From Paramicrosporidium saccamoebae KSL3 (Eukaryota; Fungi; Cryptomycota), in NCBI GenBank assembly GCA_002794465.1, contig MTSL01000076.1, positions 21,396-47,801 on the forward strand: DNA of 26,406 bases, given 5' to 3'. The notes under the pieces are model-generated. The model searched no databases. It was not told the origin of the DNA and saw nothing but the letters and a program-made list of their open reading frames with translations. The number at the start of each line of letters is the position of its first letter. The stretch's first letter is position 1. Made by a program: the position numbers and the translations under genes. Of the stretch, positions 4,091-25,422 are shown in pieces.

Positions 4091-4160
4091 CTTGACTACT
4101 TAGCCTATCCTAGCCCCTGTTCCGTAGTAGGCTACCCCCTGCAATCATTAATGCGGTGAG

Positions 4161-4330
4161 TGATTAGTATGTAGCGAGTGTGATTAGTAAGTGGTGCGTG
4201 TGATTAGTGTGTGGTGAGTATGATTAATATGTGGCGAGTGTGATTAGTATGTGGTGAGTGTGATTGGTATGTGGTGAGTGTGATTAATATGTGGTGAGTG
4301 TGATTAATATGTGGTGAGTGTGATTGGTAT
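4161..4330. repeat. 20-bp minisatellite, ~8.5 copies (TGATTAGTATGTGGTGAGTG)
   Basis: Units start every 20 bp from 4161 to 4321, with few substitutions. Confidence 0.97.
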
Positions 4331-4480
4331 GGTGGATTATATTAGTTGGTTTGGTTAGTCAACTTTATAAGTTGTATATAATTATTGACCTGCTAAGCTA
4401 TCGAATTAGTAGCCCCATGAACTGTATCGAGTTATCAGCTCAGTCAACTCGCCTCTATTAACCGTCTCATACTTCTCGGC

Positions 4481-4550
4481 TAGCTTACTCCATGATTTGC
4501 ATCTCATCACTCGGATAGCTTACTCTATGACTTGCATCTCATCACTCGGA
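4481..4550. repeat. 35-bp tandem duplication spanning the HSP104 stop codon
   Basis: 4481-4515 versus 4516-4550: 33 of 35 positions identical. Confidence 0.93.
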
Positions 4551-8828: not shown

Positions 8829-11102
8829 CTACTGCGTGGCTGCTACGGCCAATTTCTTCAAATGGTCAAGGAACACTTGAAGACTGACATCATCGGTGAA
8901 AATGGCCTGTCCTTGGGCCTGTCCCGCGCTTTGACCACCATAGGTAGCCGCAGTGTTAACGTGGGTTGTCGAGGGATTCAATTTGGAAATTAGGAAACGA
9001 GACTGGCTTCCATGCTGGTCACAAACTACATACATTGGAATGGGATAGCGATCCGAGAGGAGATCTTTTGCATCCTGTGCGGGGGCCTCGAGCAGGGCTT
9101 TGAGATTTGCAAACTCGGGCTTCATGTGGTATCCTTGATTACGCCACATGGCTACATGTTCCCCGTGGAAGATGACAATGTGGAAGAATGAATCCAACAT
9201 GAGAATTATTTCAGGACGGATAGAAATGGAATCCAGGAGCACTGGCTCGGGCGCCACATCTAGGGAATATGCAGTAAGAGTCGGCTGAATCATGATTAGA
9301 GAATTGTTCACGCTTTCTCGGTTTAGAACATGACGATAGAATGCAGTCTCGTCAGGAGAATTGTTAAAGACGTGCAGGAACTGGGAACGACGGAGATAGA
9401 ACATGAACTGGGGATACATAGAAAAGAGCGAAGCAAGACGGAAGCTGCTGGGATCATCTTTGCGATAATCTCCGTATTTTTGACAAATCCGAATCAGCAG
9501 ACGATCAAGCCAGCGGAGAACATCTGGAGAATCATCCACCTCTGCTTTGAAAACTGCAATCCTAGCCATTAAGACGGCTGCGGCTTCTTGGTCGAATGCG
9601 TTTTGAATGTTTGGAGAAGTGCCATCCTGGATGGACCGAGCGACTGTGGTCACGCGCAGACGCATCTGACCGGAAGAATGTTGATACTGGGTAATAAATT
9701 GAACCATTCCCATCGCACCAGGAGCAGCGGGACCAGTTCCGACAATTTCAAAATAAAATGCCTGGGTAGTACGTGGGGACAAGGTACACATTTTCCACTG
9801 GTGCGTTCCTCCAAGGCCAATTTCTGTATCAGACACTGAGGCGTTCCGTTTCTGCATGGATACAGCCGGACCAATTAGGCCACACAGGCGCAGTTCTCGA
9901 CTCACAACCACATCGGTGGTGGCATTAAAAGCCATGGTTAGATTGCCTTGTGCATCTTTTAAAAAGATTCTTTGACAGGCCTGCTTGAACATGTTCGTGT
10001 TGAATGATTCAGCCAGGACCATATTTCCACCAGTGTAATTTGACAACGTTTTCATTTCAGATAATCCGACCTGATCGAGACATCCAGTGAGAATATCCAC
10101 AGAGTGGCCATTAGTCGAGGCCCGTTTAGCAAGAGACTCGTAATACTGATTTGCCTTTTTGTAGTATTTGACCCGATCGGCGTCAATATCGTGATGGGAA
10201 CGAATAGACTCGCGGAGCTCTGGACCCACGACCATTCCTGGCCCCACTGTACAAGGACCACCAACAAACATCATGATGCGTGCGCCGCAATTGGGAAAGA
10301 GTGTCTCCAGGAGACTGATGGAAATGGAAGCAGCCACTCCCGTGGCGCGCTGTGGTCGCTTGTCCGAGTCAACTGGCCAAGGATCACGTTGTAGCTGTTC
10401 AAAAATTTGTGATAATGTAAACTCGCACATTTCCGAGGGCATTAAAAAGCGATAGGCATTACTCTGAGGAGTGCCTGCTGGACGACCGGCAGCAGGCGGA
10501 TTGAGTCCCAACATGTCTTGAATTTGAGTCTGAGAATAGTCCTTTGTTCCACGGAAGACGTAAGACTTTGGAATTTCTGCAAAACCTAGCTCGTGGACCT
10601 GGACCATGGTTCCGTAGGTGACGAGGCCAACCAGAGACTTTGGAGGGAGGAGGGACAGACTGATGACCAGTGACTCTCGAAGAGACTTTAATTCCTCCTC
10701 GTCCAGACAAGTATCCACTACAAAGAAGAAAATGGGCGGAACTGGGGAAGGCTTCATGAGGGTGTACTCGATGGTAGTGTAGCTTGGGAGCAGCTCGGCG
10801 GGCAGGTTGGTGACGCTAATGTCTTTGTACTGGGCGGGGAATTGGTTGCGCTGCAGACAAAATGGACAAATCCAAAACTTGCTTTCTACGTCAATCTGAC
10901 AATACGGGTTCAGCACCGCGCGACAAGGCGCCTTGCACACGACTGGTTCATAAGGAATAGGCGCCAAGTCTTGGCGTTCCTTAAGAGGAGTGAAGAGACA
11001 GCTAATGGGAACAACCAGCTTGTTGGCGTCGAGCCGTGCAGACGGCCAAATGTTCCAGCTAAAGCGTACCCCGTCGCGGTCCTCAATCTCTTCAAAATTC
11101 AT
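8829..11102 (-). CDS. SEC23: COPII coat inner subunit Sec23, 757 aa
   Basis: [14 protein letters not shown]; zinc finger C..C...LNPYCQID....W.CPFC.QRN; trunk FVVDTC; gelsolin-like C-terminus; [18 protein letters not shown]. Confidence 0.98.
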
Positions 11103-14170: not shown

Positions 14171-15989
14171 ATGTCGTCACCCGTGTTTCCTGACACTGGT
14201 GGAACTCATGAGAGGGGCACCAGCAGTTTGGTGTCGCCTGTCACTCCCAGTGGCCGGTCTTCAGACCACCTGACTCCTCTAACTCATTCTAGCATGCTTT
14301 CCTCGCGTCGCTGGCCTGCCGACGAGCCGAGACCAGCTGCCTCGCAGGGAACGCCGACCAAGCGGAACGACAGTGCGGCTTCTGACGGCACCGGAAAGTC
14401 AGAGCTCCTTGGCCTGGATATGAGCGGCTCCAAAATCAAGACTTTGACTCCCGGAATCTGCCGGTTTACCTTCCTAACTGAGCTTCGGCTAAGCAACAAC
14501 TTTATCACCAGGCTGCCGCCTGGCGTTGGCCAACTTCGCTCATTGGCCTTTCTGGACTTGTCAAATAACCAACTGACCGAGCTGCCCTCTGAGGTGGGAT
14601 GGCTTTGTAACATGAAGGAGCTTTTATTGTTTAACAATCATATCCAGGACCTGCCTGGCGAGATGGGATATTTGTACCAACTAGAAAATTTTGGTATCGA
14701 AGGGAACCCTATCAATGAAAATTTGCTCCAAATTGTCCACAGTCAAGGAGCTCTTGCGATTATACCATTCTTGAGGGATCACATGATCAGTACATTTGGG
14801 ATTAAGTCTAATATTGTAGCCATTGCGCCTCCATCAGACCGGTCTTGGCTTAACGTTGATTCGTATGCAGGTGGCTCGAGAAATGCAGTCACTGTGTTGT
14901 GCTACAATGTGTTGTGCGACAAGTATGCAACAAGCCAGATGTTTGGCTATGTGCCCTCCTGGTTTCTGAATTGGGATTACCGGAAACAGCTCATCCTCCA
15001 CGAAATTTTGTCATACGATGCCGATATTGTCTGTCTCCAGGAAGTGGAATCTAGCCAGTTTGACCAGTACTTTAAGCCGCAGCTCAGAATGAGAGGAGGC
15101 TATGATGGCGTCTTTAGTCCAAAGTCTCGGGCACGGACAATGAGCGAATGGGACAGGTCGTACGTCGATGGTTGTGCGACATTTTTCAAAGCTGACAAGT
15201 ACAGTGCGACGGGTACCTCACGTTTTTAGGTTTAAATTTGAAGACAAGACGCTGGTCGAGTTTAACCAGGTCGCTTTGTCGAGGCCTTCCCTGCGCAAAC
15301 ACAAGGACATGTATAACCGGGTCATGACCCGAGACAACATTGCCGTGATTGTCAGGCTTGAGCACAAGGAATCCCGCCAGGAAGTGCTGGTGGGCAATGT
15401 CCATATCCACTGGGATCCCAGCTTCCGAGACGTCAAGCTGGTGCAGACCATTATGTTGATTGAGGAGCTTGAAAAGATTAGCATGGTGCATCCCAAGGCC
15501 GCCATTATTGTTTGTGGAGATTTTAACTCTCTACCTGGAAGTGGCGTTTGTTCATTTTTAGAGACTGGAACAGTGCGGCCGGACCATCCCGACTTTATGA
15601 AACATACATATGAGCCCTATACTACGGAGGGAGCCAACCATTCCCTGAACCTGAAGAATGCCTATTCATTGGCGCCGGATCCTCTCAATTTTACCAGTTT
15701 TACCCCCATGTTTTTGGGTGTGATTGATTATGTGTGGTTCCGGCCTGGCGGATTGTCGGTCAATGGATGCCTTGGACCGGTGTCGACAGAGTATGCTAGA
15801 CAAATTGTTGGTCTTCCATCGCAGCATCTGCCATCAGACCATATATCCTTGCTGGTCGAGTTTAAGATAGAATCATCCCCCCAGGCCTTTAAAAGGGAAG
15901 GAGGAGGTCTACGATACCAGACTAGCCATCCCGACATGAGTGGCCCTGCGAGACGCATGTACTCTAGAAATAAAAACGCGATGACATAG
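14171..15989 (+). CDS. CCR4: CCR4 deadenylase (LRR plus EEP nuclease); exons 14171-14789, 14820-15198, 15230-15989; 585 aa
   Basis: LRRs (LTELRLSNN, LDLSNNQLTELP, LLLFNN) followed by EEP motifs CYNVLC, LQEVE, DGCATF, HIHWDP, CGDFNS, IDY and PSDH. Confidence 0.96.
14790..14819 (+). other. Probable 30-nt in-frame intron in CCR4 (GTACAT...TCTAAT...TTGTAG)
   Basis: 30% GC with a branch-like CTAAT. Removal gives FLRDHMITIAPPSDRSW, which fits Ccr4 LRD..PP..R spacing. It has no stop, so splicing is not strictly required. Confidence 0.7.
15199..15229 (+). other. 31-nt intron in CCR4 (GTACAG...TTTTAG)
   Basis: Required to join the two ORFs: FFKADK-FKFEDK. Confidence 0.93.
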
Positions 15990-17437: not shown

Positions 17438-17601
17438 AGATGACGCCTTTACATGGCCAATAGCATTGTATCGATAAAATCAGCCAATCTGAAACATTGT
17501 GGCTTGAGAGATGACCAGATATAGTAATTATATGCTCATCGAAAGTCCATAAAGGAGCCGCAACTGTCTTGTCCAAGGAGCAAAAGGCCCCCTTCAGGAG
17601 G

Positions 17602-19155
17602 ATGCGAGTATTCGGCGCATTGTGTTTTTTGGCTGTTGCCGGCCACTGCAAAGCATCATCAAATTTATCCGACTTGCTGAAATATGGAAGAGGGCTGTCA
17701 CTAAAGGACTTGAATGCAAAATTGGAATGGGCTAGCATGAAACCTAGCATTTCCCTCTTAGAAATGTGTCTTATTCCTATGGAAAGCCAGGCTGTAGAGA
17801 TGGATACTGTTGATGTGATCAAAGAGTCTCTTCGTGAGGGATATGATAAGATCCTTTTGTGTGCCCAAAGTAAAGCGTTTGCTGGTTGGAAAAATTCAGG
17901 AGATTATCACTGGTTCTACGCGCTCTCAATGGGGAAGGGTTGGTTCAAAGAAGAGCTGTGGGACTGGGCGGCATTTGATTGGGAAGCTAATTTTGACGCA
18001 ATTTTGAGAGCAGACAATCCAAGTTTCTTCCAACACGCCTTGGACCAAAAGCTTGCCCCTACCAGTTTAAATGCGGAAACTTTGCCATCCCAAGGTTTAC
18101 TTGAGCAGTATGATGCGGCCAAAATTATGGACCATTTGAGGATGGAGATAAAGTCGGATGAACTCTCGATACAGAAACTAGTGGATTGTGGTAAAGTCAA
18201 CACTATGCGGCTGCTGCAAGAAAGCGGGGTTGATGTTTTTGGACACTCCGATCTGCATACATGGACGGCAAATCTTGACCATCTTGATTTTGCTCTATCC
18301 ATCAATCCTGGTGGTGCCAAAGTTCAAGAGGAAATCCAAGTTGCATTCATCTGGTGTAATTTGGAGCATATCAAAGTTCTTTTCCGACACCACGTTATAG
18401 TTGCATTGGATCAAGGTTTTGTCACCTCTGCTGCAGAGTCGGGTTGCCTAAATATTATTCAGTGGGCGCACTCGATAGACCCAACTCTTGAACCAACCAA
18501 AGACTGTCTAAGCAGTATTATGGTTAATGGTCATATTGAAGTATTCAGATACCTCTACAGCCGCAATGCCAAATTTCTGCCCGAGCCGTATCAAGAAGAG
18601 GCAGCAAGTTCTTTAACCATGTGGGATCATGACATGATTGTTGAATGTTACTACATTGATTCTAGACTGATCCCACTGGAGAAGCTACATTGTCATGCCA
18701 TGAAACTAGGCAAGCACAAGGTGGTCGCCTGGACATGGGACAAGATTCACGAGCAAACTGGCCTGGCTCCAGTACCCACGGCACATGATCTTGAACGCGC
18801 AATTAATTCTTGTGTATGGTTATTGGTGCGCTGGATTGTGGATAAGAATCCGACTTTGTGTCCCAGCCGACACGTAATCAGCGCTATAAAGACGTGTGCT
18901 ACTCGTTTAGAATGTAAGAAAGAAGTGTTGAGCGAGTTTTTAGTCCTCCTAAAAAGCTTGTACGAGTTGAGCGGTGATGCCGAGTATCTGCCCACTGTGG
19001 ATGAGTTGCGCAATCAATCGGTAAGACATGTGAAATGGGTGCATAATCAAGCTCCGAATCATTTATCTCACGAAGATCTTGTTGCTATTTGTGCGTCGCA
19101 AGATGTGGGATCGGATTTTCACGAGTGGTGTGAGCAACTGATGCACCCACAATAG
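17602..19155 (+). CDS. Uncharacterised signal-peptide protein with degenerate ankyrin-like repeats (family member 1), 517 aa
   Basis: The track start at 17569 is TTG. ATG 17602 gives MRVFGALCFLAVAGHCKA, which is signal-like. Repeats include SAAESGCLNIIQWA, IMVNGHIEVFRYL and AMKLGKHKVVAW. Confidence 0.8.
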   Translation: MRVFGALCFLAVAGHCKASSNLSDLLKYGRGLSLKDLNAKLEWASMKPSISLLEMCLIPMESQAVEMDTVDVIKESLREGYDKILLCAQSKAFAGWKNSGDYHWFYALSMGKGWFKEELWDWAAFDWEANFDAILRADNPSFFQHALDQKLAPTSLNAETLPSQGLLEQYDAAKIMDHLRMEIKSDELSIQKLVDCGKVNTMRLLQESGVDVFGHSDLHTWTANLDHLDFALSINPGGAKVQEEIQVAFIWCNLEHIKVLFRHHVIVALDQGFVTSAAESGCLNIIQWAHSIDPTLEPTKDCLSSIMVNGHIEVFRYLYSRNAKFLPEPYQEEAASSLTMWDHDMIVECYYIDSRLIPLEKLHCHAMKLGKHKVVAWTWDKIHEQTGLAPVPTAHDLERAINSCVWLLVRWIVDKNPTLCPSRHVISAIKTCATRLECKKEVLSEFLVLLKSLYELSGDAEYLPTVDELRNQSVRHVKWVHNQAPNHLSHEDLVAICASQDVGSDFHEWCEQLMHPQ

Positions 19156-19690: not shown

Positions 19691-20764
19691 TCATTTCTTT
19701 TTGGTCTGTAACCACTCTAGTACTTCAAGGCTGCCACTCTCGATAGCAGCACTGCAAAGATCCTCGTGATCGTATTTGAAACTAGGATTTCCCAGCAATA
19801 TTTCTTGCACTAGCGATAGGCAGTTATGTTGGACGAGCCAGTCTAAACAGTTGGTATGAACTATCGGCATGCCATTTTGTAATCCCAGACAACACATTGG
19901 GATACGGTTATAACCCATGTGTAAGAGATATTGAAGAGTGCCGGCAGATTTAACATCACAAGGGTCAACGTGGCTGGTGTCGGGACGCAAATCTTTAACG
20001 GAATCAATGATTTGGTCCATTACGCGGGCCGGTGCATGCTGGATTACTAAATCGACATTGATTGCAATCTCTCTGATAGCTTCCGAGTGGAAATGATTAA
20101 GGATCTTGACCGCGTCAAACTTGATAATGAGGTTGCGCAATTCGTCTTTTGACAGTCCACTTAAACACAATTCATGGCGCATCACCTCGTAGAATGTAGG
20201 ATTGTCAGCCTTAAATATTACCTGCCATAGTGAGCCCCAATTGAATTGCTGTTTCTTCCAAATGCTCATATCAAAGGCCTGGGTTCCAAAGATTTTAGCC
20301 CAGAACCAATGTCTCTGCGTTTCATCTTCCCAAACAGGGCGATGCACAAAGCATCTCAGAACATTGTAACATCTAATATCAAGTGCCCGCTGCACTGCCT
20401 CTTCGAAATTGCGGAGCGCGGGGCAGGCGGTCATTATGGCCAAAGCCTCACGATAGTACTCGGCGATTTGATCATCCGTGCCTGCAAGTAGACGGCGCTT
20501 CTTAAGAAGAGACTCGAGGGATCGGAGGTTCAGGTTGCTACCCATCTCTATCAGCTTACTGTCTTGTAGCGGCTTGATGTCTTCAACTATACTCTCAAGG
20601 CTCGAGCTGCCACGAGCTCCATCCAAGCCAGTCACAGCCAAGCCTGTTTCTCTCAGACTGACCACGCCCAAGCCTGATTCTTCTAAGCCGATCCCACCCA
20701 AACCGGTTGCACCCGTTCTTTGGCTCAGGAGCAAAATAAACGAGATTACTGTAGGCCACAACAT
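19691..20764 (-). CDS. Uncharacterised signal-peptide protein, paralog of 17602-19155 (family member 2), 357 aa (376 aa if ATG 20821 is used)
   Basis: Signal-like MLWPTVISFILLLSQRTGA. Shares HWF.A..G..F...W...F.W....I..ADNP.F, then DA.KI..H and SA.ESG.L....W with member 1. Confidence 0.78.
   Translation of the reverse strand: MLWPTVISFILLLSQRTGATGLGGIGLEESGLGVVSLRETGLAVTGLDGARGSSSLESIVEDIKPLQDSKLIEMGSNLNLRSLESLLKKRRLLAGTDDQIAEYYREALAIMTACPALRNFEEAVQRALDIRCYNVLRCFVHRPVWEDETQRHWFWAKIFGTQAFDMSIWKKQQFNWGSLWQVIFKADNPTFYEVMRHELCLSGLSKDELRNLIIKFDAVKILNHFHSEAIREIAINVDLVIQHAPARVMDQIIDSVKDLRPDTSHVDPCDVKSAGTLQYLLHMGYNRIPMCCLGLQNGMPIVHTNCLDWLVQHNCLSLVQEILLGNPSFKYDHEDLCSAAIESGSLEVLEWLQTKKK
20623..20712 (-). 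repeat. Six 15-bp coding repeats encoding xGLxx pentapeptides
   Basis: CCAAGCC-like motif recurs with a 15-bp period at 20623, 20638, 20653, 20668, 20683 and 20698. Confidence 0.85.
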
Positions 20765-21365
20765 GCAACGAAACAAGTCAGTGGGTCTTATCGTACGACT
20801 GCGCCACCCCCTGCCAATCATTTATCCCCTCGGTAAATTAAATCTCGATGGACTCGTCAATTGTAACTGTGGATATTTATCGGCTGATCTAGACGTAGGA
20901 TGGTGTGGTCGGCTCGTTGTCTTTATCGTTGCGTAGCGGAGAAGATGTTACGCGGCCAGTCGGCGAGCAGCAAACTCCTTTATTGTTAATTTAACGGCTT
21001 CCTTATAGGCTCTCACCAATAGCAATGTACCTAAATGTCCATCTATTAAGACGACCTCTCTTCCCCCCAGTTAGAGCTATTATTAATAAAGAATCGGGTG
21101 ACTACACTACTACATTGCATAATAAAAGGCATTGCGCTGTTGAAAGAGCAAAATTGACTGTATTAAAGTCTGTGGCGCCTTTGTTTTATCATGGGCGAAA
21201 CACCGTGTAGTCGAGTTGAAATTCTTTTATTGGCTGCCACAATATGTGCGATGACTGTTTGCAAGCAGTACTTTTTATTGGTCGGGAGAGTGTGCCCAGG
21301 GTCAGTGCAATTTGAATAAATTCTTGACAACGGGGTGCGCCAGGGCGTACACTACTCCTGAAAGT

Positions 21366-24300
21366 ATGAAGCTTGCAGTCGTAGCTCTTTGTTCTGGAGG
21401 AGTATCAGTGGTACTTGGGAGGAACAACAGTCTCTCTAGTGCAAGCTTGTTAAGTGTCGCTATCGCGGGAGCACTTCAAATACACAGTGTAGACTCCAGC
21501 GGTAAGCCCGTGTGAGCAGTCTTATTTATTTCTAGGTGACATTCCGAATCCTAATGATTTTCTTGACTGGAGATCTAAATGGGGATCGTTCTGGCACCGC
21601 CTGCTTCGTGACATAGACATTAAAGAAGCGGGCGCAGCTCAGACGGTAATTGCCAACTGGAGCAACCGACCATCATACTTTTTGGAACATCTTACTGCTA
21701 GCGGTGCCGAAACTCTAGTCAACACTTTTATTTATAAAAGCAGACATGAAGGCTACCAGAGGCTCGACTCGAAAGCTCTTGAAAAGTTTTTTGGTGCCAT
21801 GAGTGAACAGGAAATTGATGATTGGAGCTATCCAGTTTGCGAAAAGTTTGTTCGCTTTTCTCCATGGCTCAAACATCCTGAAGCTATTTCGCACGAACGA
21901 TGCCGGAAGCACATGTTTGACATTTTAAGCGCTGAAAGCAGGGTCGAACTGAAGACCATTAACATCCCGGTGGATTTTGCGATTAGATATGCAGAGCCGA
22001 TTCTAGGATGCATCAGCAAGCTTTCACCTGCCCCGTGGAATGAGATCCGCTCTGCACTTTTGAATACAATCCTGAGTGATCGAGAGGCCGTTAAAAAGCA
22101 CTTTAAATTCGACCAGATCCTCTCGTTTGTACCAGAAAAACTGAGGGCTATTACCTCGGCTGCGATGGCTGTTATCGGGGGAGACGTAGAGTCTGAACAT
22201 TCGCTGGCAAAGACTGATATTGGATCGATTTTGGACGTGCTACAAGGTGACATTTTCTCCGAATACAACGGTCCGCTCCACCCTGAAACTTTGAAAAAGC
22301 TGCGACCAGCACAACTCGGGAACTTTGGCGAGCGCCTTGGCACCCCAGTATGTCAGAATTTGGATTTGTCTTCATTGGGTCGCGCTTTCAACCGGGATAT
22401 TTCAGAAATGTGCCTGATAGGCTACTGGTCCACCGGACCACGGCCTGCGCTTGGTCTACGGTCTATTCCAGATGTGATCAGGGATTATCTAGGAGACACT
22501 ATTATGAATATCCACACGACAGATTTACAAGGACTTTCAGTTCCGTGCCTAGACAAACTCTTTGAGGATTTCCAATTGCTTAAAACGAGACCAATTGGCG
22601 ATTGGTTGTCGTTGGAGACGAACCGGGACCTTTATTCTGTGCACCTTACGGCAACGACATTTTCAGCGCTGCTCAAGTTGCATCCGGAGCTTGCTAGTGT
22701 ACTTTTGAAAAAGGTCAACAATCTTCCCGATGATATTTTTAGCTCATGCGACACAACTCTGTTGATACAGCTTTCCGGCGACTGCGGGTCCGACCGCCAA
22801 ATAGCGGGCTTACCATACTTGAACAATGTTATTCAAAGACGCGCCAATGCAGTGGCAATTGGGCACCATCTCGCAGAGGAAACTTTGTTTTGCGAGCACT
22901 TGTCTGAGGATGACTATAAGAGTCTGGTCTGGCTACGTAAAGCTATCGGACCAAAAGGAAAGGCCAGAGTTAGATTTGCTGTAGACGAGCTAAAGTACCC
23001 AGAACTGTCTGGTGACAGTGAGGCATGGAAAAGGTGTCTGCATCAAGAGCATATTGATGGCGATTTAATGGCTTTTCTTGTTCAGCAAAAAGGCTTTTGT
23101 GAAGCGATGATGGGCGCAGCAGGCTTTGTCGAGCGGGCCGATGAACGCACGTATCTTTTTGTGGAAGGCCCCTGTCTGTTGGCTTTTAAAGGTCATATTT
23201 CTCCCGGGAATGTCGCCCAACTGGCACAGACCGCCTTTTCATCGTTTACCTCGGCAGACTTTGAGTCTTTATTTGAGATGGGAATACATTTGAAACACCT
23301 AAATAGTGGGCAAATCAATCGTATATCGGAGGAAGCGTGGTCAAAAATGCCCATACAAGAGGTCAATGAACTTGCTGATGAGCAAATCAGTGAACTGAAT
23401 ACAGAGAGATTGTCTTTGATGGATGACTTGGCCGAGCTTAGCTTGAGAGTTCTAAAACGCCTTTCAGATTATAACCCTCCTCGTGTCAAGGAGCTTGTTA
23501 AGCCGGAAATGATCAACGAATTTCCTGATGACCTGTTTGACTCATTTACACCTAAGGAATTTTCAAAGTTCAAGCTCAAAGATCTGGCCTTGGGCCAGTT
23601 GCAGAATTTGGGGCACGATCTTTTGGCAGAGGTGGAAAATGGTGATATTAATGATCTCGACGAGGAGCAATTTGAAGTTATTAGCAATAACCTAAGTTTC
23701 CTGAAGAGCCTCAGCGGGTTGAACAAGGAGATTTTGGGAGTGATCGAACCGTACCAAGTTTCTGACTTGATTGATACTATTGATGCAGAGAGCTGCAAGT
23801 ATTTTAGCGATTCGGCGTTTATGGACATCTCACCCAAGAGTCTTGAAAGGTTCCGACCAGCAGATTTCCGCATTGAGCAGATTAATAAAATGCCAAGAGA
23901 GATTCGTGGCCTTTTCAAGGAGGAGGACATTCTGTTATTGAATGATAAAGACTTGCTTGAAGATTACAAATCATGCCGAGAGGACCTTTTGAGAACGAAG
24001 GATCGTTTCGTCACGGCTGCTGTGTACGCGGTAAAACTGGATGCGGTAGATCTAAACGCCGGATGGGCAATTCTAAAGGAGTACAGACGGGAGATAAAGC
24101 GTAACGTCGTTTACCATGGGCAAAACTTTGAGGAAATTTCTTACTACGCAAATGATCCGAAACTTTGGTTTGCCGGAGCTGTAGACATTTGGGACTTGTT
24201 GGCATCGGTCAGTCTTTTGTCGAAGGGAGGCACGTCCAAGGAGCTGGAATATCAAGACGGTTGTTTTGATATTGCCGAATCTATGAAGTGGATTTTAGAT

Positions 24301-25422
24301 TCCCCTGATGAAATTACTGCCGCGCCAACGACAATTAGAGTCAAAGGTGACACGAGCTTTGCTAATCGTCGTATTGATTGGGTGAAAGACATGTTGGGGC
24401 AACTTTTGGTGCTTACCGAATCGACGGAAATGGGTGAACATCGTTTCAAGTGGCTCGTTGACTCTGGCACTGGTGATGCACTTGGAATCCTGTTTGGCCT
24501 GGCAGCCAATTTCGGGGTGGCTATTCCTGTCAAGATTGAGGCGAAATTTCTAGATTTGGTGTTCCATCATATCATGGATATTGGCAAGATTGTTGCCTAC
24601 TATGAAGAGACATACAAGAAGGAAATTGAGGCGTTTGGCAAGGACCTAAAGCCGACCAGTTTTATCAATTTTGCAAGCGAGATTGGCGCTCCGATCCGAG
24701 AACGAAATCCCAAAGGCCAAATCATGGACCAGTTTATTGACTTTGTCTTTTCCTTCCACCAAGGCTTGTCTAAGGTGTTTCCTATTGGATATGTCCAGTA
24801 TGCACGCGAATCTATTCGCTCCACCCTCTCACGCAATTTCTTTTATCCACCAAAGATTGTAGACGAAAGCCGGGCCGAGGACGAAGCACAAGGAAATGTC
24901 ACGCTGTCACTTGTTCCAGGATACATGTTAACCATTGGAGACGTGTTCAAGTCTTTTATCATGGCGTTGGAAGGAGATGCAAAAGAAAGACTGGTTCAGC
25001 TCACTGGGACAAATGACCACAATGTCGCTTACTTTAATGACTATCACACTGCCAAGACCATCTTTGCTGATCTTGCTCCTGCACTAGCCCCAGCCCCAGG
25101 CGAGGATAGTTACGTTCCTCATGAAGGACACTATTTTTTTGCAGAGAGTCCAGAGGTCGTGATTCACCGTGGTCAGGAATATTTTGGCTACTTTAAAAAA
25201 GTTTTTGAAATCCAATGCGAAATGCTTAACCTCCAGATGGGCGATATTGATTCAAATTTTCTTGAGGACGCCCACCAGTTTGAAAAAACTCATCAAAAAC
25301 TGGTTCAGCAGATTGACTGGGATGGCGAACGGTTCGAGATTCCGCACCAGCCGGCCTCTTCACTGATTCAAGGCTTTGTGACATGGCTAAATAAGGAGGA
25401 CCGTGAAGTTGCCGACTACTAG
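21366..25422 (+). CDS. Large signal-peptide protein with helical repeats and a C-terminal divergent HECT-like domain; exons 21366-21501 and 21536-25422; ~1340 aa
   Basis: The track start at 21682 is TTG and the frame is open upstream to the intron. Exon 1 begins MKLAVVALCSGGVSVVLG. HECT-like blocks: AESMKWILDSPDEI..TTIRVKGD..RRIDWVKDML, LGILFGLAANFGVAIPVKIEAKFLDLV, FHQGLSKVFP and FKSFIMALEGDAKERLVQLTG. Confidence 0.75.
21502..21535 (+). other. 34-nt intron (GTAAGC...TTCTAG)
   Basis: Phase 1 (G|GT) with a pyrimidine-rich 3' end. Splicing fuses the signal-peptide exon to the long ORF in frame. Confidence 0.85.

Follow-up and report, generated by a model that had tools for sequence, protein, structure and literature searches.

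A predicted HECT-like domain with Asp-Trp-Asp at the conserved cysteine column of its family in PSACC_01062 of Paramicrosporidium saccamoebae

We analyzed a window of 26,406 nucleotides from Paramicrosporidium saccamoebae KSL3 (contig MTSL01000076.1, positions 21,396 to 47,801 of the forward strand). The gene considered here lies at 21366-25422 of this window on the plus strand, as do all of its features described below, and encodes the 'hypothetical protein' PSACC_01062 (P0001; 1335 aa), whose sequence is identical to the annotation. The C-terminal domain of this protein is predicted to adopt the fold of HECT ubiquitin ligases, and Asp-Trp-Asp (D-W-D) stands where most of its relatives carry a conserved cysteine. 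The reading we favor, with a probability of about 0.65, is that the domain belongs to a HECT-like paralogue encoded by an intact gene, and that this paralogue is secreted and is a catalytically dead pseudo-ligase. With no thioester cysteine and a truncated putative E2-binding region, the HECT-like domain would be unable to take ubiquitin from a ubiquitin-conjugating enzyme (E2). With the fold retained, the protein, which would be secreted or exposed at the surface, probably acts by binding, as a non-catalytic binding or scaffold paralogue.

The C-terminal ~400 residues were modelled with AlphaFold2 using the family alignment, which contained 14 relatives only. The model had a mean predicted local distance difference test score (pLDDT) of 65 and a predicted template modelling score (pTM) of 0.55, and the pLDDT was ~76-88 across most of the N-lobe (24229..24933), at ~80-88 for the larger part of its core, and in parts of the C-lobe (24934..25419). 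The C-lobe runs to the last residue, placing the HECT-like domain at the very C-terminus of the protein, and the acidic helical linker that precedes the N-lobe (23719..24228) was modelled at pLDDT <50 (model residues 728-862; residues 1-34 of the C-domain model). Foldseek comparison of the C-domain model with the PDB gave 60 matches at E<=1e-3, and the best 50 of these 60 were all HECT domains (E 5e-6 to 6e-4), from NEDD4, NEDD4L, SMURF1/2, WWP1/2, ITCH, HUWE1, E6AP, UBR5, and Tom1. The alignments of these best 50 spanned 294-469 columns, mostly 320-370. The HECT-like fold put forward in the original prediction was thus recovered from the family-based model, and the structural evidence that the C-terminal domain has the predicted two-lobed HECT fold is decisive within its limits.

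Sequence profiles of the family pointed in the same direction. In five relatives, the Pfam HECT model (PF00632) was the best or near-best match, sub-threshold at 12.4-19.1 bits against a cut-off of 23.9 (E 1.1e-3 to 0.12) and colinear throughout (profile positions 43-260). When family profiles (alignments A1, A2, and A5) were searched against PDB sequences, HECT chains led, with AREL1 first (E=0.035-0.13), followed by SMURF1/2, E6AP, and TOM1; HECT chains accounted for 9 of the 12 matches at E<=10, and the aligned stretch was block 4 described below. Because the E value was never better than 0.035, sequence profiles alone are insufficient to establish HECT membership.

Blocks 2, 3, and 4 of the HECT-like motifs, which had been read in HECT order from the translation, were present in the open reading frame (ORF) 21682-25422 and are conserved in the family of relatives. 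Block 2 (LG.LFGLA..F...IP, 24478-24564) has a Gly, an Ala, and a Pro conserved family-wide, and block 3 (FHQGLSKVFP, matching F.QGL.KV.P; 24754-24783) has a conserved Phe. Block 4 (F..FI.AL....KERLVQLTG, 24946-25008), which ends in the Thr-Gly (TG) pair at 25003-25008, forms the opening helices of the C-lobe and aligns with the HECT chains of AREL1, SMURF1/2, TOM1, and E6AP. The domain shows no general decay. Of 43 positions conserved in >=70% of the other members, it keeps 28 (18/28 in the N-lobe and 10/15 in the C-lobe), which is within the range of the other members. In the motifs G-G-x-x-R and G-K-A-x-Q, residues conserved across the family have been lost.

An exhaustive HMMER search with PSACC_01062 returned 34 proteins at E<=1e-3, most of which share the N-terminal 500-600 residues (E down to 1.5e-25). 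The C-terminal region was matched by P0025 at E=7.3e-8; this match is colinear and covers blocks 2-4 as well as the last 88 residues. Both sequences finish in A-D-Y. In a comparison limited to the C-terminal 475 residues, the same C-domain was found in P0013, P0018, P0022, P0023, P0004, P0007, P0011, and P0019. When the C-terminal region was used in a word-based search of proteins, PSACC_01062 itself was the only match. P0018 is the same-genome paralogue PSACC_03196, named 'HECT domain-containing protein' in UniRef, and a word search from it revealed three further Paramicrosporidium paralogues, PSACC_03654, PSACC_03195, and the partial PSACC_02888. The remaining relatives come from metagenome or read-archive assemblies; their contigs are compact, contain few introns, and also carry eukaryotic housekeeping genes. 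The A2 and A5 alignments of the HECT-like domain contain 10 invariant columns, and PSACC_01062 forms the longest branch in the family tree. This is a small lineage-specific family in which a signal-peptide-like N-terminus is followed by a Cys-containing alpha-solenoid and then by the HECT-like domain. PSACC_01062 belongs to it through both its homologous N-terminal solenoid and its homologous HECT-like C-domain, and the conserved loop cysteine is absent.

Some further observations were made on these relatives. PSACC_03195 and PSACC_03196 (L005, 2392-5712 and 6001-9450) are arranged in tandem on a different contig of this genome, and both are intronless and Cys-bearing. In two metagenomic relatives (L006 and L010), the HECT-like gene is flanked alike, with PIG-F upstream and a convergent subtilisin-type peptidase (Inhibitor_I9 + Peptidase_S8) downstream; the shared neighbours indicate conserved synteny between two related uncultured genomes. 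P0025 (P0035; L002, ~10500-11000), the closest C-domain relative, carries a ~150-residue acidic insertion in its C-lobe, and this insertion holds an internal near-duplicate in which ..RSMGFSVGLVSDLDN.SNEEDFSE.. occurs twice.

The cysteine column was examined in alignments A2, A4, and A5, of which A5 covered the C-terminal domains only, given as DNA references. A cysteine 30-38 residues from the C-terminus is conserved in 14 of the 17 complete family members, that is, in 14 of the 16 complete relatives of PSACC_01062; the exceptions are D-W-D in PSACC_01062, Ser in P0013, and Gly in P0011. The three complete paralogues of the same genome have S-A-T-C-F-x-x-[ILF]-x-[LF]-P at this column. The S-A-T-C-F..LP context closely resembles the canonical HECT active site, except at the His position two residues upstream of the Cys. 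The expectation that the catalytic-site cysteine is missing from PSACC_01062 therefore held, with D-W-D (25315..25323; 32-34 residues from the C-terminus) at the column where these paralogues hold S-A-T-C-F. When the paralogues were checked for the canonical His-Thr-Cys, the Cys was found to be kept (as S-A-T-C-F in the three complete ones) and the His was not. The distance from the Cys column to a conserved Asn of the last helix is a fixed 22 residues in nearly all members. Which residue of D-W-D falls in the column depends on the alignment (D1214 by A2, D1212 by A5) because the loop is 6 residues longer in PSACC_01062 and P0013. In the model, a short strand and then the last long helix follow the Cys-column loop, as in HECT C-lobes.

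The conserved family cysteine is probably catalytic, as its motif and position suggest, and the copy in PSACC_01062 would then be inactive; most likely, PSACC_01062 is unable to accept ubiquitin as a thioester. Within the family, the cysteine has been lost at least twice, because P0011 (Gly) belongs to the other main clade.

The absence of cysteine over ~70 residues downstream of block 4 was confirmed: past the Cys codon at 24262, the sole further Cys codon is at 25216, and the final 67 residues contain none. A Cys-free run of 70 residues is unremarkable by itself (P = 0.40 at the 1.3% Cys content of the protein). In canonical HECTs, the catalytic Cys lies ~30-40 residues after TG. The corresponding distance from TG to the Cys column is ~105 residues in PSACC_01062 and 79-105 across the family, and the surplus comprises a variable insertion together with one strand and two helices that are absent from canonical HECTs. 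The insertion (25009..25152; model residues 296-343) has pLDDT <50 and varies in length across the family. TAKTIF (25048-25065) and PHEGHYFF (25117-25140), the candidate active-site registers of the original prediction, both lie inside this low-confidence, length-variable segment of the C-lobe and are ruled out as active-site registers. Nor do 70-120 extra residues follow the domain, as had been supposed; the surplus is the family-wide insertion inside the C-lobe together with the two family-wide helices, and, as in HECTs, the domain extends to the C-terminus.

The single late cysteine (25216..25218; ORF residue 1179) bears on whether PSACC_01062 could be an active HECT-type ligase with a relocated nucleophile, either this Cys or a non-Cys residue. 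One C-lobe Cys does exist, the rearrangement of the family C-lobe by the insertion means that its geometry could differ from that of canonical HECTs, and the Ser at the P0013 column hints at tolerance of non-Cys members. However, Cys 25216 is non-conserved, aligning to His, Leu, or Arg in every relative, and it lies in the middle of predicted helix 351-367 of the model, ~35 residues ahead of the active-site loop, rather than in that loop. The segment at the E2-binding position is truncated as well. We regard the relocated nucleophile, which the earlier reading had left as an option, as highly improbable, and Cys 25216 is ruled out in this role as an unconserved column.

The second difference between PSACC_01062 and its relatives lies in the N-lobe. 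In canonical HECTs, the E2-binding small subdomain occupies the position between blocks 2 and 3 (E6AP-UbcH7 structure, 1c4z). The corresponding segment of PSACC_01062 (24613..24735), delimited by two invariant anchors, is 39 residues long, compared with 82-131 in all 16 relatives, and the pLDDT of the remnant is low (<50 over model residues 176-194). From the order of the motifs, this shortened segment is probably the counterpart of the small subdomain. Its reduction to 39 residues argues against a role as an E2 trap. An inactive HECT decoy that sequesters host E2~ubiquitin, as first proposed, would suit a HECT fold without Cys, and the signal-peptide-like N-terminus and intranuclear lifestyle are in keeping with it. 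On the other side, the E2-position segment is not only shortened but modelled as disordered, and several family-conserved N-lobe residues are altered. The proposal is thereby weakened, and we consider such a decoy unlikely. A catalytically dead pseudo-ligase that acts by some other form of binding remains our preferred reading.

Several points weigh against this preferred reading, and the first group of them concerns the fold. The confidence of the C-domain model is moderate, with its 14 aligned relatives, and its template modelling (TM) scores to HECT structures were 0.31-0.44; such modest values are expected because of the mobile inter-lobe hinge and ~100 low-confidence residues. The whole protein and two C-terminal pieces gave nothing against Pfam and NCBIfam, even at E<=10, so the proposed PF00632 check drew a blank on PSACC_01062 itself. 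A phmmer search of PDB sequences gave nothing relevant for PSACC_01062, nor for its paralogue P0018. These blank searches with PSACC_01062 are what would be expected if the resemblance were due to chance and the region were unrelated to HECT. However, each of the best 50 of the 60 Foldseek matches is a HECT structure aligned along the entire domain, three independent profile searches have HECT chains at the top, and the sub-threshold Pfam HECT matches of five relatives are colinear, which makes chance resemblance hardly credible.

The second group concerns the cysteine column. The equivalence of the family Cys column with the canonical catalytic Cys is presumed from motif, position, and secondary-structure order. 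In the Cys-bearing relatives, too, the canonical His at two positions ahead of the Cys is absent; ligase activity is therefore only putative for the family as a whole. In addition, a weak HMMER alignment (E=0.3) places the active-site stretch of the SMURF2 C-lobe on an earlier family segment, the extra strand A-x-x-x-x-V-V-I-H. If this segment were the canonical strand, the family Cys would not be catalytic, no catalytic Cys would exist anywhere in the family, and its final ~70 residues would form a family-specific extension. The SMURF2 alignment is not significant, and under this register the conservation of a Cys among 14 of 17 members would go unexplained. The paralogue T-C-F..x-L-P motif, the ~30-38 residues to the C-terminus, and the strand-plus-helix that follows form the canonical pattern instead. 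The SMURF2-derived register is thus unlikely, and the account of the family built on it is decidedly improbable; PSACC_01062 is without a Cys at this position under that register too.

A last point is that the secreted status of PSACC_01062 would follow from N-terminal hydrophobicity and module topology. The N-terminal 10-mer is the hydrophobicity maximum of the protein, and likewise in the full-length relatives. Behind it lies an all-alpha solenoid module with conserved cysteines (21565..23718), shared by ~30 relatives (HMMER E down to 1.5e-25). The AlphaFold2 model of this module is wholly helical, with pLDDT 85-95 over model residues 10-630 (620 residues), and alignment A3 shows that its cysteines are invariant. 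In Foldseek, only generic HEAT/ARM-type solenoids were matched, at TM<=0.2. A leucine-rich repeat (LRR) identity, suggested by weak LRR_5 and LRRC15 matches, was rejected, as the model is all-alpha and only HEAT/ARM-type matches were found.

The setting of the module in other proteins bears on its topology. In a dozen metagenomic relatives, it directly precedes a single transmembrane helix, after which comes a short basic tail. The hydrophobic N-termini in all full-length members and these C-terminal anchors indicate that the module, together with fusions lacking an intervening membrane span, would be extracytoplasmic. PSACC_01062 therefore probably leaves the parasite cell, so far as its sequence can tell. 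The Paramicrosporidium proteins P0017, P0021, P0029, and P0033 have the module fused to alpha/beta-hydrolase ('Proteinase (Secreted protein)') and PGAP1-like domains. Its recurrence suggests a carrier or targeting module shared by exported proteins.

P. saccamoebae belongs to the Rozellomycota and parasitizes amoebae, living in their nucleus (PMC5701793). HECT, ubiquitin, and secreted proteins all go unmentioned in its genome paper. Given this intranuclear lifestyle, export would place the protein in the host nucleus. A broader proposal is that Paramicrosporidium and its uncultured relatives export HECT-like ligases on a common solenoid carrier into the host cell, here the amoeba nucleus, and that PSACC_01062 is a dead offshoot keeping the fold for binding, for example to trap substrates, to serve as an adaptor, or to regulate its active paralogues. 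We offer this only tentatively and think it doubtful as a whole. The family would then be a eukaryotic counterpart of the bacterial HECT-like effectors.

The gene model is a two-exon structure. Exon 1 (21366..21486) opens with the ATG at 21366 and encodes the signal-peptide-like hydrophobic N-terminus; it was placed by tblastn of P0001 at 100% identity. A 49-nt GT..AG intron (21487..21535) follows, and its removal joins ..QIHS to DIPN.. of P0001. Exon 2 (21536..25422), of which the ORF 21682-25422 is the larger part, is an open frame through the stop at 25420-25422. It contains neither an internal stop nor a frameshift, and the gene is therefore considered intact. The start of exon 2 aligns with the residues just after the hydrophobic N-termini of the relatives, which supports the model with ATG 21366 and the intron.

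PSACC_01062 lies close to the end of contig MTSL01000076.1, and its neighbours in the window are eukaryotic housekeeping genes: Hsp104/ClpB, Sec23, Hsp70, a CCR4-like LRR-nuclease, Rpn11, and a biotin-protein ligase N-domain. Nothing in the window concerns a virus or a human contig. When the window was searched by tblastn with the protein, and in a self-comparison, neither a paralogue of PSACC_01062 within the window nor an internal repeat was found. Directly upstream lies a divergent pair of ORFs, 17569-19155 (+) and 19691-20821 (-), of 528 and 376 aa. These two are mutual paralogues (BLASTP E=2e-12, 30% identity over 87 aa), both open with a hydrophobic stretch, and neither has a Pfam match; the public annotation has just short spliced products of 126 and 172 aa at these positions. 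The CCR4-like gene at 14171-15989 (LRR plus endonuclease/exonuclease/phosphatase domains) appears as two overlapping frames in the ORF list and as one 582-aa product in the public annotation, consistent with a short intron. A 20-bp tandem repeat of 8.6 copies with 87% matches occupies the intergenic positions 4160-4331 beside the 3' end of the Hsp104 gene, with lesser tandem repeats at 1212-1381 and 4475-4550.

A thioester Cys is the defining feature of HECT ligases, which are regarded as enzymes of the cytosol or nucleus. Our literature searches found no described Cys-less HECT and no signal-peptide-bearing HECT family, including none in Rozellomycota or microsporidia, an absence that is not proof. 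A survey of eukaryotic HECTs found fungi to be HECT-poor, with little domain diversification (PMC3673628). In this early-diverging fungal parasite of amoebae, at least five genes fuse a HECT-like domain to a module that is sited outside the cell in related proteins. An automatic pipeline has already given the paralogues a HECT label, which PSACC_01062 lacks. Should the family be exported, its members would be the first host-directed HECT-like effector candidates from a eukaryote living as an intracellular parasite, and they would offer a natural active/inactive pair for comparison. Without export, a pseudo-enzyme branch would still be added to the HECT fold. The example also shows that a HECT fold can escape every sequence model and yet stay recognisable through structure prediction.

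Compared with the canonical HECT E3s (NEDD4/Rsp5, SMURF1/2, WWP1/2, E6AP, and HUWE1), PSACC_01062 is alike in its predicted two-lobed fold, the order of blocks 2-3-4, the C-terminal position of the domain, and the strand and helix after the loop. It differs in having no significant sequence match to them, no Cys at the active-site column, and a shortened segment at the E2 position, and the 79-105 residues from TG to the Cys column in its family contrast with ~30-40 in the canonical enzymes. Unlike these cytosolic or nuclear ligases, it begins with a signal-peptide-like N-terminus followed by a Cys-containing alpha-solenoid. A further comparison is with the paralogues PSACC_03196, PSACC_03195, PSACC_03654, and PSACC_02888, which have the same architecture and homologous N- and C-terminal modules in the same genome. 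The complete paralogues carry S-A-T-C-F and a 122-129-residue N-lobe segment, whereas PSACC_01062 has a segment of 39, and the identity of the C-domains is ~20%. The UEV domains of Tsg101 and Mms2 offer a parallel of another kind, being a fold of the ubiquitin cascade without the thioester Cys that, in the known cases, acts by binding (cf. PMC11725782), although theirs is the E2 fold and not HECT. There is also a likeness in concept to the bacterial effectors SopA and NleL, in which a HECT-like domain of an intracellular parasite or pathogen is exposed to the ubiquitin machinery of the host (PMC3013003, PMC5241803). Both are absent from the best 50 of the 60 Foldseek matches, and the N-module of PSACC_01062 is all-alpha and not a beta-helix. 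SopA and NleL depend on a Cys for their ligase activity, are delivered through type III secretion, and have a beta-helix N-terminal domain, whereas PSACC_01062 is eukaryotic and Cys-less and has a signal-peptide-like N-terminus.

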